Assembly (NCBI RefSeq): GCF_006345805.1
Contig: NC_043002.1
Coordinates: 94,054,001 to 94,118,000 of the forward strand
Origin: Octopus sinensis
Lineage: Eukaryota
DNA: 64,000 nt
Direction of reading: 5' to 3'
Shown here: positions 23,382 to 49,295 of the stretch, in pieces
How positions within the stretch are numbered: position 1 is the first letter of the stretch
Layout: each line of letters begins with the position of its first letter
Program-made: the position numbers and the translations under genes
The notes under the pieces: model-generated
What the model saw: only the letters and a program-made list of their open reading frames with translations
Database searches by the model: none
What the model was told of the DNA's origin: nothing

Positions 23382-24389
23382 TTACGAAGAATCTTCCAGG
23401 GTTGAATCTGTTGTGGAAGTAGTTTTGAAAATTTTTATATTGAATAATTCTTTTAAAATTTTCAAAAATTCATTCCGGAAACGAGCATTTAACATACCAT
23501 AAACAACAGGATTTAAAGAACTGTTTAGGATCCACAATCTTATGCCGAATTCCTTGAGTCTCTCAACTGGTACCGATAATTTGATGTTTTTCAAAAGAGG
23601 ATATGTTATGCCTAAAAGCAAACAAGGGATAAAGCTTATCACAAATAATACAGTGATACTTGCTATAATGGAATTAACACGTCGACTTCTTCTCCTCTTT
23701 TCAGAAAATGTCCTCCGAAAATCTTTCTGATCGTTTTTCCGTAGTGAGATGCTCTTTTCTCTGAAGCGTTGTTCAGCCTTGCGTCTGACTAAAACATACA
23801 GAACAGACATTACGACTAATATGATAATGTTAAAAATTAGTAATCCAATAAAGTAGTGTTGCAGTTTTGAATATGGTACAATGTACGTACAAATGGACAG
23901 TCCATGGTAGTCAATCCGGTCGAAATACAAAATTGGTGGTACAGATACCAAAATAGCAATGATATTGATGATGATAGCTGATATTTTGGCGTGACGTATT
24001 GTAAGTTGATATTTGTTGAACCGGCAAACTTTGTTGTATCGCTCCAGAGAAATGATCAAAAGAGTTAGTTCAGACGAAGTACAAGTAAAAAATACCATAA
24101 ATTTATCCATCTTACAAAGTATATTGTTTGGATAGTCGAGGGTATATAATATAGATGTTAATTCGAGAGGGATACCAAATAAACAACTCAAACTATCATA
24201 GATAGCCAGGAAAAATATGAAAATATTCAGAGGTGATTTCCTAAGGCGAAATCCATAAATATACAGAACAAACAAGTTTCCGAAAATTCCTATAGGCATC
24301 ATTATTATCAAGAATATCAAAGCAGGTCGTGTTGTATGTAAAGGATATATCTCGCTATCATTTTGTGTCATGTTTTCTGTAAATGCCAT
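23382..24389 (-). CDS. Orphan rhodopsin-like (class A) GPCR, copy 1, 335 aa
   Basis: Seven hydrophobic segments, N-terminal N-glycosylation sites, TM1 GN, TM2 LAIYD, TM3 C...LERY, TM7 NPVVY. Polypyrimidine/TAG acceptor at 24396, 6 nt before the ATG. Confidence 0.93.
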   Translation of the reverse strand: MAFTENMTQNDSEIYPLHTTRPALIFLIIMMPIGIFGNLFVLYIYGFRLRKSPLNIFIFFLAIYDSLSCLFGIPLELTSILYTLDYPNNILCKMDKFMVFFTCTSSELTLLIISLERYNKVCRFNKYQLTIRHAKISAIIINIIAILVSVPPILYFDRIDYHGLSICTYIVPYSKLQHYFIGLLIFNIIILVVMSVLYVLVRRKAEQRFREKSISLRKNDQKDFRRTFSEKRRRSRRVNSIIASITVLFVISFIPCLLLGITYPLLKNIKLSVPVERLKEFGIRLWILNSSLNPVVYGMLNARFRNEFLKILKELFNIKIFKTTSTTDSTLEDSS

Positions 24390-25104
24390 TATTTACTATA
24401 AGGGAAAATAAAAAAAAATTTTTTTCAAGAATATTGAAATATATCAGTTATAAGAGAGAAACTAAATACGAGCTTCAACAGACAACGTCTGTAATGGAGG
24501 CTGTAAGAAATGTTTTTCAGACTAACGACCAAACAACTTTGTTTTAACAAAAGTTTCAGTAGGGATGGAAAGTTAAATTATTATGAACAAACGTACATCC
24601 TGAAAAGATAAAACACATGTCAAAAGAAACGTTCAGATGAAATTGAATTTTTGTAAACAATGACACATGAAAGCTAGATTTGTCTTCTATTTTCCTGTTG
24701 CAGGAAATAAGGCAAGTAGTGTTGATTACGAAGCAGTGAAAGAATTAAATTTCGACAAAAACACAGGAGTGTTTGTTTACATCAATCTTTTGCACCATAA
24801 CTTAGTTCATAGAAAATTAAAATCCAGTATGTTTTGCTGACCACGGTTCGAAGGACAATCTGATATTGGTGGGGAGAATGATTGTTATTTTTGAGTTATT
24901 TAAAAATATATCAACAGAAGGTTTACAGGTGAACGCTAATTATACATCAAAAGTCTGATAGATAATGAAGTTTAATGAAGAACAAAGGTGAGGATGTTTC
25001 TTAAGTTGTATTTTGTTTCTTTGTTACTTATCAAAAAACAAAACAAATAAAATAATTTAAATTTACTTTTGATGATTAAACAAAAGAAACTTTTATTATT
25101 TTGC

Positions 25105-25310
25105 TTGTAAGACAAGGCGTCGAGTTGACAGAATCGTTAGCATGGAAGACAAAATGCTTAGTTGCATTTCTTCGGGCTCATTTTTTTCGGAATTCGTCTT
25201 TCCTTTTCATCATTTCGGGGTCGATAAAATAAGTGCCAGTTGAGTACTGGGGTCAAGTAATCAACAAGTCCTCTACCCCCAAAATACAGGTCTTGAGCCT
25301 AAAGTAGAAA
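25105..25310 (+). mobile_element. SINE family A variant, diverged
   Basis: aaggcgtcgagttgacagaatcgttagc...tttcggggtcgataaaataagtgccag. Confidence 0.7.
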
Positions 25311-25588
25311 TATCATTTTCTTGTAAGTGGTGTGATATCAGATGGAAAATGAGTCGAGTACATTACAAAATGTCTTGTTTTGAATCCATATTCTATTGTC
25401 GCTAACTTTGCTTTTCATGCTTCTGGTATCAATCAAATATCTATTAGTTACTAGACTCAATATAACTGTTCCGCGCCACCACCACACTTCCAAATTTGTA
25501 AACTTTGAGTCGATGTTAGTAATTAATTTTAGGTTATCTTCAATAATCTCATGACAAGTTTGAGGTTACAACGCTGTTTGTGTCATGG

Positions 25589-26542
25589 CTACTTCTGCAG
25601 ACAAGTCAGGAAAATCTGACGGAAGCGACTGTTTAATAATCCATAGACAATGGGGTTTAATGCACCGTTAAAGTACCACATTCGATAGCCCAGTTGTCTC
25701 AAAGATTCCATAACTTCTGTAAGTTTTACATCACTTTGTGGATAAGCAACTGTGAAAATTAGGCTAGGGATGAAACTGAATGCAAATAAGAACGTAATGC
25801 ATATAAGAATTTTGTTTGTTTGTCTAATCTTTTTATAGGCTGTTAAGTTTTGATGGTGCTCGTTCATGTTATTCAAATTTAGACTTACTATATAGTTCGC
25901 ATGCTTCTTAGCTGCCTTCCAAATGCGGTAATATAATAGAAGCATTATTATCAAAATGATTAAGTCAATTATCAGGTATATTAAGAAATAAGTTTGAAAA
26001 AATTTCTCATAAGCAGGTTTGAACATACAGACCTCAACAACTAAATTTGGTGAAATAGGAATCGCTAGTTTATCGAAGAACACTGCACCGAAAAACGCAA
26101 TTACAATGGAAAGGAAACCAATTATCACAGCCGTTATTTTAGCTTGTCGAACCGAAAGTTGTTGCTTATCATGACGGCAAACTATATTATATCTCTCCAC
26201 TGCTATCACAAACAAGGTTATAGCCGAAGTAATGCTACTGTAAAATATTAAAAATTTTTCTAGTTTACAAAGAATTCTGTTGGGATACATCACAGGATAA
26301 CACGAGCCGACTATTTCTAGGGGTATTCCGAAAAAGCAGCCAATCATGTCAAAAGCAGCCAAAGAAATTAGAAAAATATGAACAGGTAGTTTCTGAAAAC
26401 GAAAGCCATAAATGTACAAAGCTGTAGCATTGCCGAATACACCAATAGGCATCAAAATAGAGACAAGAATAATTGATGGTAGCATAATAAGAAATATGCT
26501 TGAATTAATATCTTCGATTGTGGTGGTATTACTATAATTCAT
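25589..26542 (-). CDS. Orphan class A GPCR, copy 2, 317 aa
   Basis: GN, LAAFD, C...AVERY, SFIP, NPIVY; close paralog of copies 3 and 4. Confidence 0.93.
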   Translation of the reverse strand: MNYSNTTTIEDINSSIFLIMLPSIILVSILMPIGVFGNATALYIYGFRFQKLPVHIFLISLAAFDMIGCFFGIPLEIVGSCYPVMYPNRILCKLEKFLIFYSSITSAITLFVIAVERYNIVCRHDKQQLSVRQAKITAVIIGFLSIVIAFFGAVFFDKLAIPISPNLVVEVCMFKPAYEKFFQTYFLIYLIIDLIILIIMLLLYYRIWKAAKKHANYIVSLNLNNMNEHHQNLTAYKKIRQTNKILICITFLFAFSFIPSLIFTVAYPQSDVKLTEVMESLRQLGYRMWYFNGALNPIVYGLLNSRFRQIFLTCLQK

Positions 26543-26832
26543 TTTGTTTTATTTTACGTTTTCTTTCTTTTACAAATTTCCAACCGGAATATATTTACCT
26601 TCCACATATATTTGATATCCTTTAGGAGGCTTTTTTTTTCGCACGTGGTAGTTGAATGTCTTACAATTACATTTGATTATGTAACTTTTGTCTAAAAAGA
26701 GTCCACCAATGATTCAAATACGAACGTTAAAAGTCAATGTAAAGTTTTATGCATTTTACTCAGTAATGTCATCAGTCGATTTTTATCTAAGTAGAAGGAA
26801 AACGTCCTTACATTGTTAAGGGCAACAGATAT

Positions 26833-27060
26833 CTGAATTGTAAATGTAATAATAATAAACAGAATAACAATGGGTCCTGGATATGAAAGATAAGCGGAAA
26901 AAAAAAACCCGGAAGGAAATCGGAAATGTATAAGTGTTTATAATCATGTCACGGGAATGGTGAAGCTAGTCGTATCTTGAATAAAGCTAAACCAAGAAAC
27001 CTGAAGTGATTTGCGATCTGTACCCCTCGGTTAAGCAAATACCGGACCGTGATTACTTAC
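26833..27060 (-). other. Predicted 5'-UTR intron of GPCR copy 2 (paralogous introns at 33374-33560 and 49574-49789)
   Basis: Minus-strand GTAAGT donor and AATTCAG acceptor at equivalent positions upstream of copies 2, 3 and 4. Confidence 0.6.
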
Positions 27061-28436
27061 ATTGTGTCTATAGAGAACATAAATAAATTCGCCATTGTTC
27101 TCTCTATTCTTTAAGTAGGCCTTGGTGAAGAGACTGTAAGCAAGACCATAGCAAACCCTCTGAGACCTGTTTGAGTGGCACCCTTAACTTTCCGCTGAAA
27201 CACTTACAAGTCATGAACTTGCATTAAATGAAAAAAATTAAATGAAAAAAAAAAATCTTACCCTCCCTCTTGCCTCTTTCGTTGTACTCTTCACAATGAG
27301 AGAAAAGTCAAGCACCGCAAGTAGATGTGTGAAAAACGAAATTTGAATTTTGAAAAAGTCTATCTATAAAGCGACATTTTGAATAATTTATTTTAAACTT
27401 TATCTGCTAACTCATCAATTATTCAGTTATTTGGAACAGATGGGTTTTGAGATTTAAATTAGGTAATTTTTTAAGATTTTAGTTCTTGTGTATAAGGGGC
27501 CCACCGAACTTGAAGTGCCCCAGGATCTCACTCCCTGGTTTAAATCCGGTTGGGGGCACACTCGTGTGGGCATGATCGAACGTCTTAGTGAGGGACTAAA
27601 GGGAAATGGTAAATTTTTTTCGTTAAAATATTAGGTGGGAAATATGCGAACGATATAAAGTAATTAGTAGTATTACTATTATTACTATATTATTACTTAT
27701 TAGTTATTTCTGGGATGACTAAATATAAGCATCTGTGGCGTTTCTAACTAGAGGTGAAGAGGACCCATTCCCTGTCAGCAAAGAGATCTGCTTTATTGTA
27801 CACATCAATATCTCTATATCTAGTTTTACTTGGGTTTTGCTTTCTCCATAAATTTTGTCTCACCACCCCAGCATTCTTAATACTGGATCTGCACCTGTAA
27901 TTGTTTTAGATTTGAACGAAGAAAGGAAATGTTTGTTGAAGACAGAGGAAATGTTTATTCACAGAGACGTATAATAAATAGAATGAGCAATGAAATAAAC
28001 TTTACAATTTCGGACATGAGTTCTTATACTCATCAATAAAAAGTCAAAAAGCGGTGATGTATGTTGGCAATAGAAAAATGTTTGGGACATAAGAAAGAAA
28101 CGAAGTTTGCGAAACTAAAGAAACTAAGAAAAAGAATTGCAATGAAAACAGATCTGGCAATGGAAATGAGAATCGCAGCAGAGGAGAAGCAGGGTTAGTG
28201 GAGAAAAAAAAAAAAAAAAAAAGAATAAAAATCTCTCTTTCATCGTTTACTCGCTTCAGTCACTGGATTTCGCCCATGCTTGGACATCGCCTTAAAGGAT
28301 TGAGTCGATCAAATCGGCCTTGGTTTATAAAAGCCTGACGTTCATTCTGTTTGTCTCTTTGTTGTATCGTTAGGCTATGGAGACAAAACAAACCAACACC
28401 GGTTGTCAAGCGGTAGTGGGAGACAAACACAAGCTC

Positions 28437-28472
<36 letters not shown>

Positions 28473-28479
28473 ATATATA

Positions 28480-28575
28480 AATTTTTGTTTCAGTTTCTAT
28501 CTATCAGATCCATTCACATGGCTTCGGTCGGCCCAAGGCTATTGTAGAAGATGTCGCGCAATGACCACAGCTGAG
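28480..28575 (-). mobile_element. SINE family B head, decayed
   Basis: cagtttctatctatcagatccattcacatggcttcggtcggcccaaggctattgtagaagat. Confidence 0.6.
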
Positions 28576-28977
28576 CAAAATTCAAACCGAATAAAAGATA
28601 TCGAAACAAAAATAATAAAAAAATAAATAAAAATAAAAGAAAGAAAGAAAGAAAGAAAGAAGAAAGAGTAAAAAACAAATAAAAAGAAATTCTGGAAATA
28701 TGTAGATTGTTGGAGGAAATAAAATTGAAATAAAGGTAAATATAAATATAAAACTGACGAATAAAGAATATTTATGACATAACATGAATAACGTTGTATA
28801 TGTTATGATAATATGCATATATATATATATATTATATATATATCAGCCGAAATTGCGAGGATGATCCGGTTCTTGACTGAAGATTAGAGGCTTCGAATGA
28901 CCCGTCCTTTTTTTGTGTCGTCTATTTGAGTGTCTTGCGTTCTTGTCCCATTTTGTATTTTTATATATATATATTTT

Positions 28978-29024
<47 letters not shown>

Positions 29025-29459
29025 TACATTTATACATACATACACACATATACATACATGCATGCATGCATCCATACATATATGCATATATACATTTGAG
29101 GTTACATAAATCATATAACCTGTCTGGCAAGCTTGTGTGTGTGTATATATATATATTATAATAATTAATTCTTAGGTTAACAGCGGAAAATAACGATACA
29201 AATTACGCACACGCACATACATATGTAGTGTGTATGTGTGTGCCTTTGTGTGTGCGCATGCTGCGTGAATTTTTTTAATGTATATATATATGTACGTATG
29301 TATGTATATATGTATGTAGTAAATATTAGTTATATAATAAAAGGAAGATTGCGGGGGTAAAGAAACCGTAGTGGGAGTAATTTAAGAAACCGCGATAACT
29401 AGAGCAGGAGAAAGAAAATAGAATATAGAAGCAAAAATGGAGTTAAAGCAAGAAGTATA

Positions 29460-29855
29460 TCTTTATATATAAAAGTGAAGTTGTGTGTCTGTCTCCTACG
29501 ATTTAGATTCCTAACTACTCCCACATTTTGCGGTGCAGTGTAACCAAAAGCGGGTATCTTATAGTCGTGATTCATATCGAGCCCTTCTGGGTATTAGCGC
29601 GCATCTACGATGAGTCTACGATTAAAAAAAAAAATTACCATTATTTTTTCCCATTTTTAATGCATTTTTTTGCTATTATATAAGGGAAGTACTCTCTAAA
29701 AATGTATTATTAAATCTCAGAACGTAAAAAGCTACAGTAACCCCCCCCCCTTTGTGGTTAGCTATATTGAGATGGCTATTATACTTTACATCTCTAAAAA
29801 TGCTTATATAGTTATTTCCCTTACAAACTCGAGCAACGCCGGGCGATACTGCTAG
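29460..29855 (+). mobile_element. Non-autonomous Helitron-like element
   Basis: A|TC...hairpin...CTAG|T. Confidence 0.85.
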
Positions 29856-30145
29856 TTACTTATAAAAGATAAAAAAAAATTAAGACTTAATATATTTAAA
29901 ATATAAGGGTTAATTGTATATGGTGAGCTACGATAAGGACTCAACGCTTATAAGAAGCAAACATATTGGATTCCCAAAACCCCTTTGTTTACCCGAAGGA
30001 ATTAAATTTTTTACGACGATTAAATAATTGGAAATTAAATAAATGAATTTCATGTTTCTGAGGTATTTAATAAGGGATTTAATAAGGAGTACAGGATTTT
30101 GATTTTAAATTTGAAATAGCGAAAGTTTAATGATTTGATAAAACT

Positions 30146-30574
30146 GGATCTTTTCGGTTTGAACGGCAGTTTTTTCTAGCGGTGTCATATGAAATTGTCA
30201 CCCATAATTATGACCCTAGTATCGATCTATTGCATTTCAATCTGTTTTAGGGTTAGGGTTAGTTAGGGTTAGGAGTGGGGGGAAGGGTATCTTTTTTTCT
30301 TCACAAATGTAAATAAACCCAATCTGTTTCTTCAACAAGGGACATATTCATACGGCACAGAATGTTTTTTTTACCTCAATAGACGTCACTGATGGTTGAA
30401 ATTGCAGAAATTGAAGAAAAAAAAACAATAAATATCTTACAAACTATAGAATTTTCTCAATAAAGCCAAGAGAAAAAGATGTTTTATAAACACATTGTAC
30501 CAGTATACAAAGTTAAAAATATTTTAGTTACCTAGAAATTATGTTAAAAACTGCCGTTCAAACCGAAAAGATCC
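30146..30574. mobile_element. GGATC-TIR MITE, second copy, inverted relative to 17711-18163
   Basis: Same TIRs; TSD ATAAAACT at 30138-30145 and 30575-30582; internal (TTAGGG)n. Confidence 0.9.
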
Positions 30575-30733
30575 ATAAAACTTAACGGAGGCTTATCCGT
30601 TTTTCTGGGTATTAAAACGTATTCCCGCGCTGACTGACGCTGTTCCTGATATAGCTGGCTGTCAAATCAATGTAAGAAAGAGGTGTTCTATTGTTATCGA
30701 TTGTGTTAGAAACGGCTAATACTATTCCCTGAT

Positions 30734-30955
30734 TACGAGGGGATACTGAAAATTTCCTGGCTTTATGGGTATCACGAAAGGCCTTGCTGGAGGCCCAACC
30801 TTCCGAGTTCTTTAACAGGGCTTAGAAAAAAACTGAAGGACCTCTGCTATAAGTGTGTGAATCTGAGAGGGGAATATGTTGGATAGAATCATAACTAACC
30901 GATCCTCCAGTATTTTCTGTTACCCCAAGCCACGAACATTTCGGCACCCGTTCGT
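30734..30955 (+). mobile_element. Mariner-derived MITE
   Basis: tacgaggggg...cacccgttcgta ends; internal homology to 22561-22761. Confidence 0.6.
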
Positions 30956-30969
30956 AAGTGTTTAATAGT

Positions 30970-30971
30970 AC

Positions 30972-31007
<36 letters not shown>

Positions 31008-31290
31008 ACACACACACACACACACACAACATACACACACACACACACACACCACACACACACTAACACACACACCACACTACACACACACACACATACA
31101 CACACACACACACACACACTAACACACACACACACACACTAACACACACACACACACACACTACACACACACACACGCACACACACACACACACACACAA
31201 CACACCACACACACACACACACGCACATACGCAAGCACGCCCACCCGCACACGTTCATATACATATACACACACACAAACATATTTGTAT
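30970..31290. repeat. (CA)n microsatellite
   Basis: Read directly. Confidence 0.95.
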
Positions 31291-31673: not shown

Positions 31674-32669
31674 TTATTGTGATGCACCTGAAGATACGAT
31701 GCTGTTATTTTGCAGACAATTTAGGAAAATCTGACGAAAGCGGCTGTTTAATAGTCCGTAGACAATAGGGTTCATTGCACCGTTAAAAATCCACATTCGA
31801 AAGCCTATTTGTCTCAAAGATTCCACAAATACTGGAATATCCGCCTCGTATCTCGGTGGATAAATAATTCCGAGGAGTAGACCAGGGATTAAGCTGATAA
31901 CAAATAAGACCGTAATGCACAGCAGAATTTTATTGGTTTGTCTAATCTTTGTGTATGTTTTTAAGTTTTTTTGGTGGGCATCCGCATCCCCGAAATTTCG
32001 ACTTTCCGTATAGATAGCACGTGTATAATGCTTTTTAGCTACCTTCCAAATGCGATAATATAATAGAAACATTATTGCCAAAATGATTATGTCGATTAAA
32101 AGTGATATCAGAAAATAACTTTTAAAAATTTTATCATAACGAGATGTATAAACACACATCTCAACGTTTAAATTTGACGAAATCGGAATTTTCATTTTAT
32201 CGAAAAACAAAACACCGGGTAAGGCAACTACGATGCACAGGAAACCAATTATCACAGATATTATTTTAGCTTGACGAACCGAAAGTTGCTGTTTATCATG
32301 GCGACAAACTTTGTTATATCTCTCCACTGCTATCACAAACAATGTGGAAGTTGAGGTACTGATGCTGTAGTATATTAAGAATCTTTCCAGCTTGCAAAGA
32401 ATTCGGTTGGGATACATCAAAGGATACAATAATTCGACCATTTCTAGAGGTATTCCGAAAAGGCAACCAATCATATCAAAAACAGCTAAACAAATTAGGA
32501 AAATATGAACTGGTAATTTCTGGAAACGAAAACCATAGATGTACATGGCTGTAGCATTGCCGAATACACCAACAGGCATCAAAATAGAGATGAGAATAAA
32601 CGCTGGTCTCATAGCAGCAAATGTGTCTCGATTAATATCCTCGATTGTGGTAGTATTGCTATAATTCAT
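31674..32669 (-). CDS. Orphan class A GPCR, copy 3, 331 aa
   Basis: GN, LAVFD, C...AVERY, SLIP, NPIVY; intact ORF. Confidence 0.93.
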   Translation of the reverse strand: MNYSNTTTIEDINRDTFAAMRPAFILISILMPVGVFGNATAMYIYGFRFQKLPVHIFLICLAVFDMIGCLFGIPLEMVELLYPLMYPNRILCKLERFLIYYSISTSTSTLFVIAVERYNKVCRHDKQQLSVRQAKIISVIIGFLCIVVALPGVLFFDKMKIPISSNLNVEMCVYTSRYDKIFKSYFLISLLIDIIILAIMFLLYYRIWKVAKKHYTRAIYTESRNFGDADAHQKNLKTYTKIRQTNKILLCITVLFVISLIPGLLLGIIYPPRYEADIPVFVESLRQIGFRMWIFNGAMNPIVYGLLNSRFRQIFLNCLQNNSIVSSGASQ

Positions 32670-32889
32670 TTTATTTTAATGTTTGTTTTTTGCTTATGAA
32701 TTCCTTGTTGCAATATATTCACTTTCCACATAAATATATCCTTGTGGAGAGTATTTTTTCGCTAGCGATATTCATTTGGTTTACAATTACATTTAATTAC
32801 GCACCTTTTAGTCTTAAAAGAGTCCTTCAATTATTCAAATACGAACGTTAGAAGTTAAAATAACGTTTTTGTATATTTCACACTGCAAT

Positions 32890-33285
32890 TAGCGCGCCGG
32901 GAGAAATGCTTAGCGGTATTTCGTCTGTCGTTACGTTCTGAGTTCAAATTCCGCCGAGGTCGACTTTGCCTTTCATCCTTTCGGGGTCGATAAATTCAGT
33001 ACCAGTTACGCACTGGGGACGATTTAATCGACTTAATACCTATGTCTGTCCTTGTTTGTCCCCTCTGTGTTTAGCCCCTTGTGGGTAATAAAGAAATAGG
33101 TATTTCGTCTGTCGTTACGTTCTGAGTTCAAATTCCGCCGAGGTCGACTTTGCCTTTCGTCCTTTCGGGGACGATAAATAAAGTACCAGTTTCGCACTGG
33201 GATCGATGTAATCGACTTAATCCCTTTGTCAGTCCTTGTTTGTCCCCTCTGTGTTTAGCGCCTTGTGGGCAGTAGTAAAGAAATA
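32890..33285 (+). mobile_element. SINE family A head-to-tail dimer inside one TSD
   Basis: Junction AAGAAATA|GGTATTTCGTC at about 33098. TSD tatatttYacactgcaat at 32872-32889 and 33286-33303. Confidence 0.88.
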
Positions 33286-35127: not shown

Positions 35128-35239
35128 TTTCGCAGCGATCTCCTGTACTTGGATTGCAAATGCATAACCTTCAAAGTGTGATGTGATGTAGCGGTCACAG
35201 GTTCAAGAGAGTCTGCGCTTCATGCCGATATTATTGCTT

Positions 35240-35471: not shown

Positions 35472-36252
35472 GATATTATTGTCTTCTTCAAGTCTTCGTA
35501 AAACGTACTCATGCATAGTCTTTTTTTTAGGTATACCCAGCAGTTCACATTCAAGCCTTTTTTTTTTTTTTAGGTATTCTAGTGCGGCTGTTTTAGGGTT
35601 GTATGGGGATTCATCAGGAAGAGAGTTTTTCATGAGGAGCTCGCTGCCGAGACAGAATATTGTTCTCTTCATTTCCACCACTAAGTCAATCTATCATTTA
35701 TTTTTGCTGTTGTTGTTTAGCAGGTGCTCTCTATAAGACATTTGAAGGTAGTCCTCACTCATCTTAAGCCTGTATCTCCTTTATCTCTTCTAAGATAGAA
35801 CCCATAGATATCACTATTCCTGCGGAGATTTCCAGTTGATGTCAGTATCTCACGGATTTTTACTTTTATGCAGTGGATTTCCATTACAGATCACGATGTA
35901 CCCCAAGTGTTGTAATCAATACTGGTACTGAAAATGAATTTTGGGGTATCTTATTGTAAGAGGAGAGCTCATACTGCCATATGTCTGGCATAATATTCTC
36001 GGGGTCACTCTATTTTTAGTCTCAGTACCTTCGTATATGTTTTCATCAATACAGTTCTATATTCAAGAGATGAGGAATTATGTACACTATTTACATTATT
36101 TACATTTGACGAGTATTTGTCCTCATCTTGTTTGTTGTTAACACAACGTTTCGGCTGATATACCCTCCGGCCTTCATCATTTCGCTAAGCATTTCGCCCG
36201 GCGTGCTAACGTTCTGCCAGCTCGCCGTCTTGAAGAGATCATATTATCATTA

Positions 36253-36590
36253 CATACATACACACATGCATGCATACATACATACATACATACATACATA
36301 CATACAAGCATACACATAGACATACAAGCATACACATAGACATACTACATACATACATACACACACATACACACATGCACACATACATACATACATACAT
36401 ACATACTACATACATACATACATACATACATACATACATACATACATACATACATACGTACGTACATACGACTGCACACGCTCACGAATATATACATATG
36501 TACGTGTACACACACATACGCACGCACGCACACAAGCCCACACGTACACACACGCACAGACAGACAGACACACACACACACACACACACT
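36253..36590. repeat. (TACA)n/(CA)n microsatellites
   Basis: Read directly. Confidence 0.95.
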
Positions 36591-37170: not shown

Positions 37171-37183
37171 GTCTTTCTGTCTT

Positions 37184-37913: not shown

Positions 37914-38514
37914 AAGGCGGCGAGCTGGCAGAATCGTTAGCACGCCGAGCGAAATACTTAGCGGTATTTCGTCTGCCGTTACGTTGTGAGTTCAAATTCC
38001 GCCGAGGTCGACTTTGCCTTTCATCCTTTCGGGGTCGATAAATTAAGTACCAGTTACGCACTGGGGTCGATATAATCGACTTAATACCTATGTCTGTCCT
38101 TGTTTGTCCCCTCTATGTTTAGCCCCTAGTGGGTAATAAAGAAATAGGTATTTCATCTGCCGTTACGTTCTGAGTTCAAATTCCGCCGAGGTCGACTTTG
38201 CTTTTCATCCTTTCGGGGTCGATAAATTAAGTACCAGTTACGCACTGGGGTCGATATAATCGACTTAATACCTATGTCTGTCCTTGTTTGTCCCCTCTAT
38301 GTTTAGCCCCTAGTGGGTAATAAAGAAATAGGTATTTCGTCTGCCGTTACGTTCTGAGTTCAAATTCCGCCGAGGTCGACTTTGCTTTTCATCCTTTCGG
38401 GGTCGATAAATTAAGTACCAGTTACGCACTGGGGTCGATATAATCGACTTAATACCTATGTCTGTCCTTGTTTGTCCCCTCTATGTTTAGCCCCTTGTGG
38501 GTAATAAAGAAATA
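37914..38514 (+). mobile_element. SINE family A trimer: head plus three 184-bp units
   Basis: Units start at 37964, 38148 and 38332. TSD ggtagtggtagtgt at 37900-37913 and 38515-38528. Confidence 0.92.
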
Positions 38515-38836
38515 GGTAGTGGTAGTGTTGATGCTGATGGTGGTGTTTGCGTTAGTGGTCGTGTTGATGTTGACGTTAATGGTGGTGGTGTTGGCGTTTG
38601 TGGTGGTGGTGTTGACGTTGTTGGTGGTGTTGATGGTGGCGGTTGTGTTGATGTTGGTGGTGGTGATAGTGCTGAGGATAGTGTTGTTGGTGATGGATGT
38701 GGGGCTGGTGGTGGTGTTCGTGGCGAGGTGGTGGCGATGACATTAGTGATGTTGGAGATGGTGATGTTGCTGATAGTATGATGGCGTTGATGGTGGTGGT
38801 TTTATTGGGTTTTGCAGTGCTTTAGTAACTGATGAA

Positions 38837-39608: not shown

Positions 39609-40039
39609 CTAACTCTTTCCCTCCCTTCTACACCATCAACTAGCAACCAGTGAGCGAACTTGTCACTGCCACTACTATTACCGTATTTTCTGGTGTATAA
39701 GCCGCATTTTTTTTTTTTTACCTTCCATGTTTTGATAATGTTATTTTTTTTTATCTAATAAAGACTTTTATATTGACGAAATGTGTTTGTTGTTGATTAT
39801 AGTAAGGTAAAATCATGACAATAACGATAGATCTCATAGTTGTAAAATAATGGATTCTGAAACTACATATACGTCAACAACAAAAAAGCTAGCCGCGGGC
39901 TCGTTGCTCTCTGGTGTTGATTAACTCCCCTGTCAGTACATAGACTTGTGCTATGTTTGTGGTTATAAGGGTCTTTGAGTGTTATTTCTAGCAATGTAAG
40001 TGCTACCATACACCCTCAGTTACTATTAGTGACAATTAT

Positions 40040-40175
40040 GTGTGTGTGTGCATGCGCGCGTGTGCGTATATATATAAAATATATATATATACTATATATA
40101 ATATATATAATACATATATATATACATATATAGATAGATACATACATACATACATACATAAACATACATACATAC

Positions 40176-40213
<38 letters not shown>

Positions 40214-40297
40214 CTATACATATATATATATATATATAATATATACATATAAGATATATAATATATACATACATACATACATACATACAATACATAC

Positions 40298-40328
<31 letters not shown>

Positions 40329-40390
40329 ATATATCAATATATACATACAATATATATATATATATATACATACATATACACACACATTAT

Positions 40391-40421
<31 letters not shown>

Positions 40422-40496
40422 ATTAATATATAACATATACACACACACGCACACACACCACATATATATATATATCTATATATAATATACTATATA

Positions 40497-40534
<38 letters not shown>

Positions 40535-40543
40535 ACATACATA

Positions 40544-40585
<42 letters not shown>
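40040..40585. repeat. (TA)n/(TACA)n microsatellite
   Basis: Read directly. Confidence 0.95.
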
Positions 40586-40586
<1 letters not shown>

Positions 40587-40639
40587 GAAATATTAAATAA
40601 CTAAGTCTCTCTAAAAGAGACAGCGGCAGCGTTCGGAAA

Positions 40640-41036: not shown

Positions 41037-42230
41037 ATACTATATAACATTTATATAATATTTATATTACAAATATATTACAAAATTATACAATAAACAA
41101 AAAACAAAGATAGATACAGGTAATGTAGCATCAGCGAGGTATATTACTTTGACACTCAGGAAAATTGGAAGAGACTTTGAGGTTTCCAGGCTCAATTTTT
41201 CTACGAAGAGGGACTTAGAAAAGAGAACAGATGGAAGGAAGAAAAATAAAAGTCGGTCAGAGAAAACAGTATGTCTGGATCAACGGTTGCACATGTCGAA
41301 TTGGTTGGGGACAAGGGTGGCGAAGTAACCTGGCTAAAGTTTGTCTACGCAAGCATGTGTGTGTAAGAGAATAATGTGTGCGTGTGTATATGTGTGCTTG
41401 GGCGAATGCATGTACATGTGTGTGTGCAAGCATGACGGGCAAAACTGATATTGGAGGAATTTGAACCCTGAACGTAATGAGACAGAAGATAATATTCTGC
41501 CAATAATTGTTCTCACGTTGGTATTTGGCCAGAAATTTGGAAGAATAGCTAGTCGTTTAAATTGACCTCACTATTTGGACCGGTACTTTATTTTATAAAG
41601 ACCAAGAATCTGCTGGTATGTTATGTAAGGGAGATAACTAAGAAACTTTTTTGTTTTGACTAACGTTTATTTCCCTTACGTTATTTCAGAATGTATATTT
41701 GAATTTCGTTTCTAACATCATTTTTAAAAAACTTAATAAATTTTATATTACACCAAAGTCAGTTTGCATTCCAGCAGAATCATAGTGGTCAGAATAACAC
41801 TCAGAATGAAACATACTGGTGAAGAATTAGGAATATTCTTAATCAGTATGTTACAACTTTGTTCTCCTTCAAGATAATTTAAAAAAATAAAACAGCAGGT
41901 TTGAAATGATTTATTGTGTACACTGGACAATCGGCTGCTAGCCGTGAATTTACAAATGATAATACTGCAGATCATGAAGACGATATGGTTTAAACATTTG
42001 GCGATGAACATATCCAAAGAATCATGCTATTGGATGCATGAAGAGAAGATCAACGATTAAAAGTCATCGATATACCAAGCGAAACAGGCAAAGCATTTTT
42101 GCTCAATATGTTGTGTGTGTAAACAAATGAATACATACATACCTACATACATAAGTACACACACACACGCACACACACACACACACACATACACACACAC
42201 GCACGCACAAACACATACACACACAAACAC

Positions 42231-42293
<63 letters not shown>

Positions 42294-42543
42294 CACACAA
42301 GACACTTGCGAGCACAAACCCTCTCTCTCCCACCATTGCTTGACCACTGGTGCTGGAGTGTTTATGTACCCGAAACTAAGCGGTTTAGCAAAGTTTTCCG
42401 ATAAAATAACTACCAGGCTTTAAAAAAAAGGGAAAATGGGACATAAGTACCGGGTTCGATAACTCGATTAAAATTCCTCAAGGCGGTGCCCCAGCATGGC
42501 CTTACCCTAACAACTAGAAGAAAGTAAAAGTAAAAGATAAAAG

Positions 42544-42593
<50 letters not shown>

Positions 42594-42630
42594 GTATGTA
42601 TGTATATATCTATTATATATATATATTATA

Positions 42631-42662
<32 letters not shown>

Positions 42663-42884
42663 GTATTCTTTTAGGAACTGGATGTATGAAACGATAACTA
42701 ACTGTATGTATAAGCACAAAAAGAAAATGACTCTCCCCAGACATAACAGTATGTAGTATTTGGATGGATTTATTATATATTTATATTTGCTTTGAGAACC
42801 AGTTCAAAAGAAATACTTCCGGTTTCTCCAAAGTTCTTGTGACGTCGCTATATGTATGTATGTAGGCTAATATATCTAATATAT

Positions 42885-42965
<81 letters not shown>

Positions 42966-43223
42966 GAGGAACATGAAGGGTTTAGTTCACTGGTGATCTA
43001 AACGAATAGGCCACGCTGAGTAAGTGCTATAATCGGTCATCCGTTAGACTTTAAATTCACCTTACCCTAATTAAATATTACAAATGACTTGAGATACTCG
43101 TCCTACCTTGGCTTTTGTAGTCCTTTTTCCTTCAATACATACATACATACATACATACATACATACATACATACATACATACATACATACATACAAACAT
43201 ACATACATACCATATGCATATAC

Positions 43224-43259
<36 letters not shown>

Positions 43260-43539
43260 ATGCCATATTGGTTAGGATGTTGCACTCATGATCGCTAGAT
43301 CGTGATTTCAATTCATAGGGCGGGTACATATATATTTATATATCGCCTGAAGAAATGAATCCATGAAAAGTAATCTACCCGATGGCCACGGACACTAAGG
43401 ACTAAACTGCAATCATCCCAGGAATACACACTGTGATCTTAAGAGATATGTCACTTGCAGAGACGCGCGTAGCGATGCATTCAATGTTTATAAATACCAA
43501 ATATTTTTTTTTACTATGTATATATGGATATAAACTTAG

Positions 43540-44240
43540 ATAAATTTAGATATGTTTTGACCGAAGATTGGTCCTGGCCATGTCTAACTTAATAGCACCA
43601 CCTGATAGGATTAGATTCCGTTTAAAGGAAATGGGATTTTTTTTCCTCTTTGATCTGTTTCGGGACAATGTTAAATAGAGCAGGGCCTATTGAGGAAAAG
43701 AAATTGTGTTGTAGTGTATTTATGTGTTGTAATCTTGAATTGGGTAGGGGACGTATGGCCCATGGTCCTACACTTGGATGAATTTTGAAGCTAATGTTGC
43801 GGTCGTTTTGGGCAATGCTGGTGGTATATTCTCCACATTGTGCAAATGATGTACCGCTCACGGCGGCACTTGAGAGAATAGAGTTTCAATGCTTTAAGGT
43901 GGTCCAAATAATCGAGATCATTCATGCCCTTAATTCTCCCTTAATTCTTTTAGTAAATAACCTCCGAGAAGTGGAATCTTGACGTCTTGTTCTCTGGACC
44001 GGAAGGTTCTTAAGATCCAGGAGCTCATCCTACGAGCTATATCGACCTTATTGTTGATGTGAGCACTCCAACTGAGATTGCTATCGACATTTACTCCTAG
44101 ATTTCTGATATTATTAGATGCTGTAAGAGGTTCATCTGAAGGAATAGAGTTTGGCTGTTTTAGTATAGTCTTTTTCCAAAATGCATCAGCTCAAATTCTA
44201 CCTCGTTTAGTTGCATCATTTTGTCTTTGTCAGCCTATTG
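43540..44240 (-). mobile_element. CR1/L2-like LINE 3' fragment
   Basis: SSWILRTFRSR...YLDHLKALKLYSL...RRERY...SSIGPALFNIVPKQIK. Confidence 0.7.
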
Positions 44241-44252
44241 ACTCACAGTAAT

Positions 44253-44316
<64 letters not shown>

Positions 44317-45136
44317 ATATATATAATTAGTTATGAGCTACTAATAGTTTCATATACTGGAGATTATCTAGACAGGTTTTAATATTAGTAGCCCATAATT
44401 ATATATTGTTTACATTAAACAATGTCTATTTCTGAAATGGAGTACATTATACGTACATACATACATATATACATACATACATACATACATACATACATAC
44501 ATACATACATACATACATACATACATACATAATACATACATACATACACATATACATACACATATACATACATACATACATACATACATATACATACTTA
44601 CATACACATACATACATATACATACTTACATACACATACATACATACCTACATACATACCTACCTACATACATACATACATACATATATATATATATAAT
44701 ATATACATATACATACATACATACATACATACATACATACACATATACATACATACACATATACATACATACATACATACATACATATACATACTTACAT
44801 ACACATATACATACATACTAACATACAACTAACCTACATACATACATACATATATTATATATATATTAGATATATATATATATATATACGTATACATACA
44901 TACATACATACATACATACCTACATTCATACCTACATACATACATACATGCATATATATATATATAGATATAGATATATATACATACATACATACATACA
45001 TGCATACATACATACATACATACCTACCTACTTCATCCTACATACCTACATACATACGTACATATATATATATGTTCTACATACATACATACATACATAC
45101 ATACATACATACTACATACATACATACATATATACA

Positions 45137-45221
<85 letters not shown>

Positions 45222-45235
45222 TATATATATATACG
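44240..45235. repeat. (TA)n/(TACA)n microsatellite block
   Basis: Read directly. Confidence 0.95.
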
Positions 45236-45800
45236 AGAAGTTGTCGAACTAAGCAGTAAAATTATACGTAACTTCCTGAAGATATTATTCTTAGTTGTGA
45301 TGACTTTGTTCCAGTTGACGAAGGGAGCAACGTTGTATCCACTAAAAGTCTTAATGCCTGTGGTTGTACCGTCTGATTTTAACAGTAAAAAAACTGGAGC
45401 CCTAATAACATTGTTGAGAAATCTTCATCACAGAAACAACAATTACAACAATACGCGAATGTAGAGATATGTAGAAATATGCAATAGTTGTTCGGATTAC
45501 CATTAGTGAAATGACGAGTATCAATAAAGGATAAAACGTTGTTTAATTTTCCAGTGTCCTCCTGCAACCCGTTAATACAGATTTGCATTTTTGTTTTCTT
45601 CTTCATCTTCAATATCATAATGTACTTTCTGAAGTGGGTAGAATAATGAAGTAGAAATATATTCATTTTTGAAATATAAAAATTCACATCGTTTAAAATT
45701 TCAAACATTTTATAAATTAATTGTAGTTACCTCCCTTGTAATATGTTATGTATCAGGCATTTGTTTAATCTATATACATAAAACTGAAGGTGTGTAAGTG

Positions 45801-45839
<39 letters not shown>

Positions 45840-45842
45840 ATG

Positions 45843-45874
<32 letters not shown>

Positions 45875-46331
45875 CATACACACACAAAGTGCGGCAGAAG
45901 TAATGCCCTTTCTGCATTTAATAACTCTTATATATAAATGCAAAAGAGCGTTACTTCTGCCGCACGCATTGTGTGCGTGTGTGTGTGTGTGTGTGTGTGG
46001 TGTATGTGTGTGTGGTTGTGTGTGTGTGTATGTGCGTGTATATGTGTATGCATCACTAATATTCGAGAACTACCCAAATTACTATTAATACCAGCCGCCT
46101 GTCAATGAGGGTCTTAATCCACACAGTATCAAGGTATGATATAATATATATGTATCACAACACACACACACACACACCACACACACACACACATATATAT
46201 ATGGAGCGTCATGAGCCCCAAAAATGTTCAAATTCTTGCTTACTGCGAGCCCGGTGCAATTTTTAGACTTTCTGTAATGTGTCAAAATTAAAACAATATT
46301 GTAATGTGATATAATAGTTTCATTATATACA

Positions 46332-46377
<46 letters not shown>

Positions 46378-46747
46378 AAGAGAGAGGAAAGACAGATGTA
46401 TGTATATAATATATATATATATATATATATAAACCCATGAGCAGTTTTTCCATCGATCGATCAACTAAACCCTCGTTGTCATAACCCGAGGATGCCACGA
46501 ATATATATATATATATATATACATGCAATGTGTATAGAAACGTATACATGTGCTTATAAATGTGCCTAATATACATTCATATACATCAATACATCCATAA
46601 GTGTGTGCGTGGGTGTGTGTTGCATAACTATTTATAGTGTAAAATATACTTATATATACATGTATATATATTATATATATATATATTATACACATACATC
46701 TATATATAATATATATGTGTGCGTGTGTGCATATATATATATATATA

Positions 46748-46817
<70 letters not shown>

Positions 46818-46830
46818 TATATATATATAT

Positions 46831-46908
<78 letters not shown>

Positions 46909-46980
46909 TGATAAAACGTAAGATAACAAAAGAAAGAATAGACCTCATATATATGTAAATAGAGGAAATTTATCTATACA

Positions 46981-47140
46981 ATATGTTACATTACTCGGTA
47001 GTCAAGATAAAACTCTGAGTTTCAGATGCCGAAGTGGAAATTCCACACACCATCTCTTCGGTAACCGAAGAGATGGTGTGTGGATTTCCACTTCGGCATC
47101 TGAAACTCAGAGTTTATCTGACTACCGAGTAATGTAACAT
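46981..47140. repeat. About 160-bp palindrome with a 1-nt loop
   Basis: Centre ctcttcggt-a-accgaagag at 47063; arms extend to atatgttacattactcggtagtc. Confidence 0.93.
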
Positions 47141-47238
47141 ATTGTATTATATATATTATATATATAATATATATATATTTATATATATATGCACACATGC
47201 ACACACACATATATATATATAGATGTTTATACATATAC

Positions 47239-47280
<42 letters not shown>

Positions 47281-47431
47281 ATATAAGTATATTTTACATA
47301 TAAATAGTTATGCACACACACACACGCACACACTTATGGATGTATTGATGTATATGAATGTATATTAGGCACATTTATAAGCACATGTATACGTTTCTAC
47401 ACATTGCATGTATATATATATATATATATAT

Positions 47432-47800
47432 TCGTGGCACTCCGTCGGTTATGACAACGAGGGTTCTAGTTGATCCGATCGATGGAAAAACTGCTCATGG
47501 AGTTAACGTGTAAGTGGCTGAGCACTCTACAGACATGTGTACCCTTAACGTAGTTCTCAGAGAGATTCAGCGTAACAGTGTGTGACGAGGCTGGCCCTTC
47601 GAAATACCGATACAACAGAAATAGGAAGAAAGAGAGAGAGAGAGAAAGTTGTGGTGAAACTGTACAGCAGGGTTCGTCACCACCCTCTGCCTGGTGGCGC
47701 TTTATGTGTTTTCGCTCAATAAACACTCACAATGCTCGGTCTGCGAATCGGAACCGCGATCCCACGAACGACTGCGTGTCCGCTGCCCTTACCGCTGGGA
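47432..47800 (-). mobile_element. SINE family C / composite
   Basis: tcgtggcactccgtcggttatgacaacgagggttc...cccttaacgtagttctcag... Confidence 0.75.
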
Positions 47801-48275
47801 CGTTGCGCCTCCACACACACACACACACACACACGCGCACGCACGCACGCACGCACGCACACACAAACACACGTGTGTGTGTATGTATGTATGTATGTAT
47901 GTAGGTATGTATGTATGTAGATAAAACTTGGAAAAGGATGCGTGGCGTTCCATCATATAATAATATAAATAATATATAAATATATGCATATATGCATATA
48001 TTTATATATTATTTATATATTATTTATATTATGTATGTATGTATGTATGTATAAACATGTGTATTTGTACACAGAAACTTATATAATTTTTTCGAAACTA
48101 ATACATTATGTATAGTTATTCCAAAAATGTTTTGTCACTCGTCAGCATTCATTGTGACATGAATTGTTTTCAATAAGTTTGATACTATGATAATGGTATA
48201 TTAAAACACAGGTAGTTAAAATGAAAATAAAGCCGATTCTCACTGTTCATTAGTGAAAATCGATATTTTCTCCGT

Positions 48276-49295
48276 TTATCGTGAAGTATCTGAGGATGCA
48301 CCCCTCTCTGTTTCATTGGTTTTCCTGAAAACAATTCTGCAAAATATGTTCTTGGCAATCCGACGAAAGCGAGTATTTAATAATCCGTAGACTATAGGGT
48401 TCATTGTACAATTCAAGATCCACATTCGAATGACCACGTGTCTGAAATACTCCGCAACATCTGGAATGTGTTTACCTTCAATTAGTGGGTAAGTAATTCC
48501 GAGTATTAAACCTGGGATAAAGCTGATAGCAAACAAGAATGTAATGCATACGAGAATTTTATTGGTTTGTCTGATTTTTGCGTAGGTTCTTGTGTTTTGA
48601 TTGCGTGCATTCATATTATTAAGATTAAGATTTATCGTATAGTTTGTAGGTATATAATGTTCCTTGGCCACCTTCCAGATGCGTTGATATAAAAAAAACA
48701 TTACTGTTAAAATAAGTAAGTCAATTCCGAGAGATGTCAGAAAATAATTTCGGAGCCTCTCATACCCATATCTATAAAAGCAAACCTTTTCGACCGAACT
48801 GACCGAAAATGGATCGTTCATTTTTTCGAAGAATAAGGCGCCGGGTAAGGCTAATCCGACGGATCCGAAACCAATGGTCACAGTCATTATTTTAGCTGCT
48901 CGAACCGAAAGCTGTTTTTTGTTATGGCGGCAAACTTTATTATATCTCTCCACTGCTATCACAAGTAAGGTTATAGTTGAGGTAATGCTGCTGTAGAATA
49001 TAAAGAATTTTTCCAGTTTGCAAAGAATGTTGCTAGGATACATCTTAGAATACCACAATGCGACCATCTCTAATGGTATTCCGAAAATGCAACCAATCAT
49101 ATCAAAAACAGCCAAAGAAATTAGGAAAACATGAACAGGTAGTTTCTGGAAACGAAAACCATAAATGTATAAGGCTATAGAATTGCCAACTAGACCAACA
49201 GGCAATAAAATAGAGACGAAAATAAACGCTGGTTTTAAAATATTAAAATACTGTCTATTAATATCTTCAATTGTGTTGTTATTGCTATTATTCAT
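48276..49295 (-). CDS. Orphan class A GPCR, copy 4, 339 aa
   Basis: GN, LAVFD, C...AVERY, SFIP, NPIVY; intact ORF. Confidence 0.93.
   Translation of the reverse strand: MNNSNNNTIEDINRQYFNILKPAFIFVSILLPVGLVGNSIALYIYGFRFQKLPVHVFLISLAVFDMIGCIFGIPLEMVALWYSKMYPSNILCKLEKFFIFYSSITSTITLLVIAVERYNKVCRHNKKQLSVRAAKIMTVTIGFGSVGLALPGALFFEKMNDPFSVSSVEKVCFYRYGYERLRNYFLTSLGIDLLILTVMFFLYQRIWKVAKEHYIPTNYTINLNLNNMNARNQNTRTYAKIRQTNKILVCITFLFAISFIPGLILGITYPLIEGKHIPDVAEYFRHVVIRMWILNCTMNPIVYGLLNTRFRRIAKNIFCRIVFRKTNETERGASSDTSR

Follow-up and report, generated by a model that had tools for sequence, protein, structure and literature searches.

Four intact, co-oriented group 1 class A receptor genes of Octopus sinensis, probably encoding orphan receptors for endogenous ligands

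A 64-kb stretch of Octopus sinensis chromosome CM016864.1 (GCA_006345805.1), referred to below as the window, carries four genes for G-protein-coupled receptors (GPCRs) of class A, designated G1 to G4, all on the minus strand (Table 1). The locus is the O. sinensis copy of a branch of group 1, a published receptor family whose existence, lineage restriction, tandem layout and tissue expression have been known since 2019 (Ritschard et al. 2019, PMC6408891). The evidence presented below makes it probable that all four are functional orphan receptors for endogenous ligands, most likely peptides, with G1, G2 and G3 serving the posterior salivary (venom) gland, retina and nervous tissue, and G4 the central nervous system (CNS).

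The initial annotation described four co-oriented, intact open reading frames (ORFs) of 317–339 aa, and this stands in full: the coordinates are exact, every frame lies on the minus strand, and all are assigned to class A by Pfam 7tm_1 (PF00001), with scores of 81–116 bits against a gathering cut-off of 30.5. The window holds five ORFs of at least 200 aa, namely the four receptors and one CA-microsatellite artefact. Four open frames reach 300 codons or more, a length attained in 0 of 200 second-order Markov simulations (longest simulated frame, 247 codons), so chance does not account for frames this long in this AT-rich window. Matches to Srv (16.8 bits, cut-off 21), Srw (18.6, cut-off 22.2) and 7tm_4 (19, cut-off 27) remained below their gathering scores, as did a match to the class C family 7tm_3, and an assignment to the Srv/Srw or vertebrate odorant receptor (7tm_4) families was accordingly rejected. 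G2 is upstream of G1, its stop codon lying 1.2 kb from the G1 start codon, and G4 sits 15.6 kb upstream of G3. G2 and G3 share ~70% amino acid identity, G4 is ~60–62% identical to either of them, and G1 is the most divergent copy (~40% to G2–G4). The genes are already annotated, the exact protein sequences of all four being present in NCBI, UniRef and nr.

Table 1. Features of the receptor locus. Positions refer to the window unless prefixed; L007 is O. bimaculoides CM046606.1 at 77.2 Mb and L004 the same chromosome at 3.64 Mb (v2 assembly). CDS, coding sequence; SINE, short interspersed nuclear element; TRF, Tandem Repeats Finder.
Feature	Coordinates	Strand	Description
G1	23382–24389	−	single-exon CDS, 335 aa, class A GPCR; Pfam 7tm_1 2.2e-33, profile positions 1–260/260
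G2	25589–26542	−	single-exon CDS, 317 aa, class A GPCR; Pfam 7tm_1 7e-26
G3	31674–32669	−	single-exon CDS, 331 aa, class A GPCR; Pfam 7tm_1 1.3e-22
G4	48276–49295	−	single-exon CDS, 339 aa, class A GPCR; Pfam 7tm_1 5.9e-27
G1 ortholog	L007:18993–20000		A0A0L8HWH5 / XP_014768801.1, 91% identical
G2 ortholog	L007:16865–17818		A0A0L8HWJ7, 94% identical
G3 ortholog	L007:10001–10996		XP_014788334.1, 92% identical
G4 ortholog	L004:10001–11017		A0A0L8I745 / XP_014789247.1, 89–90% identical
Conserved upstream block of G2	26543–26949	−	~76% identity to L007 9603–10000, upstream of the O. bimaculoides G3 ortholog
Conserved upstream block of G3	32670–32889	−	from alignment of upstream regions; shortened by a SINE-like insertion
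Conserved upstream block of G4	49296–49637	−	~73% identity to L007 9651–10000
184-bp SINE-like repeat	32915–33269		TRF, 1.9 copies; ~250 bp upstream of the G3 start codon
Second 184-bp SINE-like array	37963–38518		3.0 copies

The 63 receptors of group 1, drawn from O. bimaculoides, Callistoctopus minor and Euprymna scolopes, form an expansion of class A that is specific to cephalopods, lies within a clade of mostly molluscan receptors bearing assorted neuropeptide-receptor names, and is characterised by tandem co-localisation, tissue-specific but divergent expression and positive selection on some branches (PMC6408891). Table S2 of that study assigns the G1, G2 and G4 orthologs of O. bimaculoides (A0A0L8HWH5, A0A0L8HWJ7 and A0A0L8I745) to class A group 1, and no characterised receptor is orthologous, which bears out the earlier proposal of a lineage-specific orphan tandem family, one that was already in print in 2019. 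The G3 ortholog, XP_014788334.1, was not matched with certainty to any Table S2 accession. A0A0L8HPF2 is a plausible candidate (it belongs to group 1 and its length fits), but its domain coordinates are offset by ~10 residues and the match is not confirmed.

A profile of G1–G4 and their orthologs, searched against 1.84 billion cluster representatives, returned ~18 full-length relatives with a short third intracellular loop (ICL3) at 200–600 bits and, below these, many hits that do not exceed 190 bits and match in two pieces around a long ICL3. The labelled relatives, within the upper score range and somewhat below it, are all from cephalopods (O. bimaculoides, Argonauta and Sepia pharaonis) and include A0A0L8HMG6 of O. 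bimaculoides, another group 1 gene, though most of the top matches are unlabelled read-set assemblies. The first labelled matches outside the cephalopods, at no more than 190 bits, are uncharacterised receptors of gastropods and bivalves, from Aplysia, Mactra, Physella ("GPR101"), Haliotis ("orexin receptor 2-like") and Biomphalaria ("D2-like"). The search data are consistent with, but do not prove, a restriction to cephalopods, the tree being that of Ritschard et al. 2019. The closest relatives that bear a name are proteins of O. bimaculoides and Argonauta hians, and the names assigned automatically to them contradict one another (type-1A angiotensin II receptor-like; galanin receptor type 2-like; neuropeptide Y receptor type 2; C3a anaphylatoxin chemotactic receptor-like; rhodopsin, GQ-coupled), and such inconsistent naming is typical of an orphan family.

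All four genes have intact 1:1 orthologs in O. bimaculoides, and the proteins encoded at the syntenic sites are sequence-identical to XP_014788334.1, A0A0L8HWJ7, A0A0L8HWH5 and A0A0L8I745. The G3, G2 and G1 orthologs occur at L007 in unchanged order and orientation, in a segment that aligns at the nucleotide level to window positions 33953->10605, and the L004 segment aligns to 57224->39918. The G4 block and the G3-G2-G1 block are ~73 Mb apart on the one chromosome of the v2 assembly and 16 kb apart in O. sinensis; the separation reflects either a scaffolding error or a large rearrangement, whose breakpoint would lie between window positions ~33.95k and 39.9k. In the fragmented v1 assembly the locus is split over at least three scaffolds, and it is the O. 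sinensis sequence that displays the whole G4-G3-G2-G1 arrangement.

A single Argonauta hians contig carries three intact copies that share one orientation and are ordered G4-like, G3-like, G2-like, the first two ~26 kb apart, so the G4-G3-G2 order and orientation are common to O. sinensis and Argonauta. G2 and G3 are also intact in the octopod represented by SRR11869391. A RhoGAP gene downstream of the Argonauta cluster had no counterpart in the window (tblastx). Copy number is stable in these comparisons, the opposite of the birth-and-death turnover by which chemosensory expansions are defined: each of the four genes has its 1:1 ortholog in O. bimaculoides, Argonauta has three co-oriented copies, and tblastn with the four proteins detected no further or decayed GPCR copies in the 64-kb window. 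A neighbour-joining (NJ) tree pairs G4 with the G4-like copy of Argonauta, P0007 (90% bootstrap), and places G2 and G3 in a 100% clade with the two other Argonauta copies; the inner order of this clade is weak (62% and 38% bootstrap), and the G3 ortholog appears in it as the sister of G2. The residues of the predicted ligand pocket distinguish the copies. One Argonauta copy carries the G3-type set (I3.36, S3.37, L6.48, G6.51, F7.39, I7.43) and one the G2-type set (S3.36, Y5.43, F6.48, S6.51, Y7.43), and because the residues match copy by copy they point to 1:1 orthology and to long-term conservation of paralog-specific binding sites. These signatures favour a G2/G3 duplication that would predate the Octopus–Argonauta split, although the NJ tree is weak on this point and synonymous sites are saturated.

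As the initial annotation had surmised, the genes are under purifying selection, though looser than core neuropeptide receptors usually experience. Between the two Octopus species (dS 0.07–0.11), the ratio of nonsynonymous to synonymous substitution rates (dN/dS, by NG86 unless stated) is 0.65 for G1 (0.88 by maximum likelihood, ML), 0.41 for G2, 0.34 for G3 and 0.52 for G4. Over longer branches the values are lower. G2 and G3 gave 0.22–0.29 in comparison with the SRR11869391/84 octopod reads (dS ~0.27; 0.28 for G2 and 0.22 for G3 in the SRR11869391 octopod), and the ratios relative to Argonauta hians are 0.17–0.19 (dS 1.3–1.7), being 0.17 for G2, 0.18 for G3 and 0.19 for G4. The dS between the Octopus paralogs G2–G4 (0.5–0.8) is smaller than that between Octopus and Argonauta orthologs (1.2–2.5, saturated), and the first ~120 codons of G2–G4 are unusually alike, with third-position identities of 0.8–0.88. 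The low paralog dS suggests either that the tandem copies have undergone partial gene conversion or that the rate in Argonauta is fast.

The residues forming the activation switches of class A receptors are intact in G1–G4: N1.50, D2.50, E/R/Y3.49–3.51, P6.50 and the NPxxY motif. In G3 these are N38, D65, E116-R117-Y118, P262 and N300-P301-x-x-Y304, and, like C92/C172, the cysteines at 3.25 and in the second extracellular loop (ECL2), they do not vary among the four copies or their orthologs. Transmembrane helix (TM) 6 carries SFIP in G1, G2 and G4 and SLIP in G3, position 6.48 being F or L and never W. No copy or ortholog has the retinal-binding Lys of opsins at 7.43, where the residue is I, Y or T, and an opsin identity is excluded. 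TM2 contains GIPLE (with E2.61), TM3 the pattern C-K-(M/L)-(D/E)-(K/R)-F and TM7 R7.40-x-W7.42. The motifs listed in the initial annotation (ERY, the TM6 sequence, the missing Lys and the TM2, TM3 and TM7 patterns) were all found. Class A receptors commonly have ERY, F6.48 and variable loops. Positions 4.50 and 5.50 are both I, neither W4.50 nor P5.50 being present, and 3.32 is I or V in all copies. The amine-binding Asp is therefore missing, and an amine receptor identity was excluded, though the α2A-adrenergic receptor tops the PDB sequence matches of G1. Conserved charges line the extracellular half of the bundle (E2.61, D/E3.28, K/R3.29, D/N5.47, E7.32, R/K7.35 and R7.40), and the N-terminus is short (~20 aa).

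Sequence variation among the paralogs is concentrated in the loops and tail, as had been noted from the start. Identity among G2–G4 is 0.78–0.80 in TM2/TM3, with TM3 the most conserved helix, and falls to 0.43 in ECL2, 0.39 in ICL3, 0.27 in ECL3 and 0.07 in the C-terminal tail. Pocket positions are identical at 18 of 38 sites and other TM positions at 107 of 177, a difference that is not significant (p = 0.15), and a hypervariable pocket of the odorant receptor kind was rejected for this reason. A common core with divergent loops is the pattern of peptide-receptor subtype families, and odorant-type receptors are hypervariable in TM3, TM5 and TM6; judged by this analogy, the variation in G1–G4 appears to follow the former pattern and not the latter. 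Traits shared across the family are S-F-x-P in TM6, R/x-x-W in TM7 and an N-terminal motif, N-x-T-(L/I)-E-(D/E)-(L/I)-N, which occupies residues 5–14 of G2–G4 (e.g., window 32628–32657, minus strand). This motif is kept across the wider cephalopod family down to ~30% overall identity, which is unusual for a family so divergent, and it could have a role in ligand binding, folding or trafficking.

The AlphaFold2 model of G3 (pLDDT 87.4, pTM 0.83) has seven TM helices, helix 8 (H8) and a two-stranded ECL2 β-hairpin, and in it TM1 is lengthened by the conserved N-terminal motif, which is helical. When the model was compared with the PDB (Foldseek), 1486 GPCR matches were returned at E<=0.001, and the top 47 are all peptide receptors (TM-score 0.62–0.76, E 4e-12 to 4e-10, identity 16–23%). 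This top set includes NPY2R, CCK1R, OX1R, GRPR, the δ- and μ-opioid receptors, NTSR1, QRFPR, NPFFR, ETBR and SSTR2, with near-equal scores. Sequence searches of the PDB were led by NPY2R, CCK1R and AT1R for G3 and by the α2A-adrenergic receptor, NPFFR1 and the μ-opioid receptor for G1, and such single-sequence matches extend over at least ten receptor types at E 1e-15 to 1e-10. With the family profile, scores range from 134 to 103 bits across NPFFR, AT1R, CCKAR, α2A, M1, NMUR and NPY2R, the best being NPFFR1/2, AT1R and CCK1R. Matches by PDB sequence, profile and Foldseek are thus flat (NPY/NPF, CCK, NPFF/SIFamide, AT1-like, somatostatin/AST-C and orexin/allatotropin types), and among them no characterised receptor emerges as an ortholog.

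G1–G4 resemble NPFFR1/2, NPY2R, CCK1R, AT1R, OX1R and NTSR1 in the seven-helix bundle with H8, the ECL2 β-hairpin, the C3.25–ECL2 disulfide and the ERY/DRY-type and NPxxY switches, but differ in having F/L at 6.48, I at 4.50 and 5.50, and a very short N-terminus and ICL3. With the other members of group 1 they share the same traits, and nothing sets them apart in kind (Ritschard et al. 2019, PMC6408891). Another instructive comparison is with OvAstCR1 and OvAstCR2 of Octopus vulgaris, which are likewise intronless class A receptors and have been deorphanised as peptide receptors (bioRxiv 10.64898/2026.02.18.706622). They are somatostatin-type orthologs of 410 and 443 aa encoded on two other chromosomes, and the differences in length and chromosome rule them out as the same genes. 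Because these two receptors are both intronless and deorphanised, an intronless CDS is compatible with neuropeptide signalling, and it loses the value as a sign of chemoreceptors that the initial annotation had given it.

Tissue distribution was taken from published bulk RNA-seq of O. bimaculoides, given as fractions of total expression of each ortholog (Ritschard et al. 2019 Table S2, PMC6408891; Table 2). All three orthologs that could be assigned are tissue-biased, with tau values of 0.84 for G1 (A0A0L8HWH5), 0.77 for G2 (A0A0L8HWJ7) and 0.87 for G4 (A0A0L8I745). The largest fractions of the G1 and G2 orthologs are in the posterior salivary gland, followed by the retina, and those of the G4 ortholog are in the subesophageal and supraesophageal brain and the axial nerve cord. 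A0A0L8HPF2, the unconfirmed candidate for the G3 ortholog, has a near-identical gland and retina profile (PMC6408891). Expression in sucker and skin, which had been put forward as a check on a chemosensory function, amounts to only 0.016–0.05 of the total.

Table 2. Expression of the O. bimaculoides orthologs of G1, G2 and G4 (fraction of total).
Tissue	G1	G2	G4
Posterior salivary gland	0.37	0.29	0.01
Retina	0.13	0.16	0.0075
Viscera	0.11	0.085	0.034
Optic lobe	0.10	0.11	0.10
Subesophageal brain	0.064	0.100	0.41
Supraesophageal brain	0.067	0.069	0.22
Axial nerve cord	0.079	0.094	0.15
Sucker	0.02	0.035	0.05
Skin	0.03	0.036	0.016

An NCBI model of O. bimaculoides, XP_052824440.1 (LOC106868170, 986 aa), joins residues 1–331 of the G3 ortholog, a 16-aa linker, residues 5–307 of G2, one further residue and residues 1–335 of G1. 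This chimera is either an annotation artefact or a product of read-through transcription across the G3-G2-G1 orthologs, and read-through would agree with G1 and G2 having an expression profile in common.

Taken together, the genes would each encode a conventional G-protein-coupled receptor, coupling being predicted from the intact switch residues, and activation would be by an endogenous, polar and probably peptide ligand. The ligand would be received in a charged vestibule (E2.61, D/E3.28, K/R3.29, E7.32, R/K7.35, R7.40 and W7.42) beneath the ECL2 β-hairpin. The paralogs would share one scaffold and differ at positions 3.33, 3.36, 3.37, 5.43, 6.48, 6.51, 7.39 and 7.43 and in ECL2 and ECL3, differences that suggest related but distinct ligands or potencies. 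G1, G2 and probably G3 would act mainly in the posterior salivary (venom) gland, retina and nervous tissue, possibly from a shared transcription unit, and G4 in the brain and axial nerve cord. The data establish the integrity, family, orthology, fold and purifying selection of the genes and the tissues in which their orthologs are expressed; the class of ligand, its endogenous source and the G-protein coupling are predicted.

Several observations weigh against this interpretation. A ligand is known for no member of group 1. Similarity to all solved receptors is low (16–23%) and flat, the α2A-adrenergic and muscarinic receptors included, so the peptide assignment rests on fold features and structural neighbours and not on orthology. 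The dN/dS values between the two Octopus species (0.34–0.65) are high for a housekeeping neuropeptide receptor, and positive selection has been reported on some group 1 branches (Ritschard et al. 2019, PMC6408891). The tissue panel consists of bulk O. bimaculoides tissues and leaves out the olfactory organ, gills and lips; the ortholog expression values may be blurred by multi-mapping or read-through among G1–G3, and those of the G3 ortholog are not tied with certainty to one accession. Other group 1 genes, on Scaffold18646 of O. bimaculoides, are biased to skin and sucker, which leaves room for sensory roles in the family (PMC6408891). That scaffold, which lies outside the window, carries a tandem cluster of six group 1 receptors, two of which peak in skin (0.31–0.41) and sucker (0.15–0.22), and these are better chemosensory candidates within group 1 than G1–G4.

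That the ligand is endogenous but not a peptide (a lipid, nucleotide, metabolite or atypical amine, for example) has a modest chance of being correct. Receptors of the lipid and nucleotide types within class A also show F or L at 6.48 and lack P5.50 and W4.50, as G1–G4 do. The best PDB sequence matches of G1 are α2A-adrenergic receptors, the N-terminus has only ~20 aa, and the conserved charged residues of the pocket could equally bind a small polar metabolite. The ECL2 β-hairpin argues the other way, as do structural neighbours that are nearly all peptide receptors, a family profile that places NPFFR, AT1R and CCK1R first, the lack of the D3.32 needed for amines, and the placement of group 1 in a clade of molluscan receptors that carry neuropeptide-receptor annotations (PMC6408891). 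The initial annotation had admitted a peptide or metabolite ligand as an alternative, and this is now the better-supported branch of its proposal.

The branch to which it leaned, that the receptors detect external cues, is improbable, and would now place them in an organ outside the tissue panel, such as the olfactory organ, the lips or a subset of sucker cells. Much about the locus invites such a reading: the tandem array of intronless genes with short N-termini, the variable ECL2 and ECL3, the raised dN/dS over short branches, the weak sub-threshold Pfam matches to Srv, Srw and 7tm_4, and the enrichment of other group 1 genes in skin and sucker, with the olfactory organ falling outside the panel. 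Lineage-specific class A expansions have also been proposed as chemoreceptors across Lophotrochozoa (Nath et al. 2025, PMC11886862), and G1–G4 resemble these in being class A, tandem and confined to a single lineage. Those expansions, however, are defined by the absence of 1:1 orthologs (PMC11886862), and G1–G4 have such orthologs in octopods and Argonauta, with fixed copy number and zero pseudogenes in the window. Cephalopods, moreover, have few lineage-specific class A expansions (Nath et al. 2025, PMC11886862) and use ionotropic chemotactile receptors instead. Sucker and skin are minor sites for the G1, G2 and G4 orthologs, where gland and CNS dominate; the pocket is not significantly more variable than other TM positions, TM3 being the most conserved helix; and the Srv, Srw and 7tm_4 matches are all under their gathering scores. 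The chemosensory leaning is therefore not upheld in the face of gland, retinal and nervous expression and stable 1:1 orthology.

It is also conceivable, but very unlikely, that the copies are ligand-independent or redundant duplicates drifting towards loss, their ORFs being intact through recent duplication or gene conversion. The G1 ratio between the Octopus species (0.65 by NG86, 0.88 by ML) would fit relaxed constraint of this kind, as would a paralog dS below that of the Octopus–Argonauta comparison and 5′ regions of 120 codons so alike in G2–G4 that some gene conversion is suggested. Drift is difficult to reconcile with ORFs that are intact in every species examined, despite dS of up to 1.3–1.7, with dN/dS down to 0.17–0.29 on longer branches and intact switch motifs, and with orthologs that are transcribed with a clear tissue bias (tau 0.77–0.87).

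As a discovery the locus adds little, the genes being annotated and the family published in 2019. Its value is in giving a complete view of one small branch of group 1, with four intact paralogs in fixed order, each retaining its own conserved pocket signature, and hence a compact target for deorphanisation, which is still lacking across the group. The venom-gland expression of the G1 and G2 orthologs hints at a lineage-specific hormonal or neural control of the gland. A tentative extension, with perhaps one chance in several, is that G3-G2-G1 constitute a co-regulated, perhaps co-transcribed, unit for a cephalopod-specific peptide family that controls venom-gland secretion, with G4 as its brain paralog, or else that the cluster has a sensory role in the olfactory organ. 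If either were true, it would provide the first ligand and function for the group 1 GPCR expansion.

Upstream of G2, G3 and G4, ~220–400 bp show 73–76% identity among the paralogs, about equal to that of the coding sequence (Table 1), and the G1 upstream region has only short stretches in common with these blocks. As judged from sequence comparison, they are probably 5′ untranslated regions or (core) promoters carried along with the duplication unit. In the alignment of the G2, G3 and G4 upstream regions no AG was conserved in register that would indicate a splice acceptor of an upstream coding exon. The SRR11869391 octopod contig (L002) is collinear with the genome except for a SINE insertion, and is uninformative on transcript splicing.

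What separates the genes is intergenic sequence of the ordinary octopus kind, made up of CA/TA/TACA microsatellites and a 184-bp SINE-like repeat. The initial annotation had described nearly every other ORF around the receptors as decayed; the surroundings are instead of this repetitive kind, and tblastn finds no decayed GPCR copies in them. Eight more ORFs of at least 110 aa in the window gave zero Pfam matches. The two SINE-like arrays (Table 1) match at 92–98% between units, and the insertion at 32915–33269 is species-specific because it is absent (alignment gaps) from the orthologous site in both O. bimaculoides (L007) and the SRR11869391 octopod (L002). Microsatellites of the CA, TA, TACA and ATAC types occur at 22636–23352, 30973–31227, 36251–36469, 40036–40583, 44449–45234 and 46085–46929; microsatellites account for most of the long ORFs other than the receptors and yield spurious ORFs of 110–238 aa, such as the 238-aa "CVCVCV" frame directly downstream of G1.

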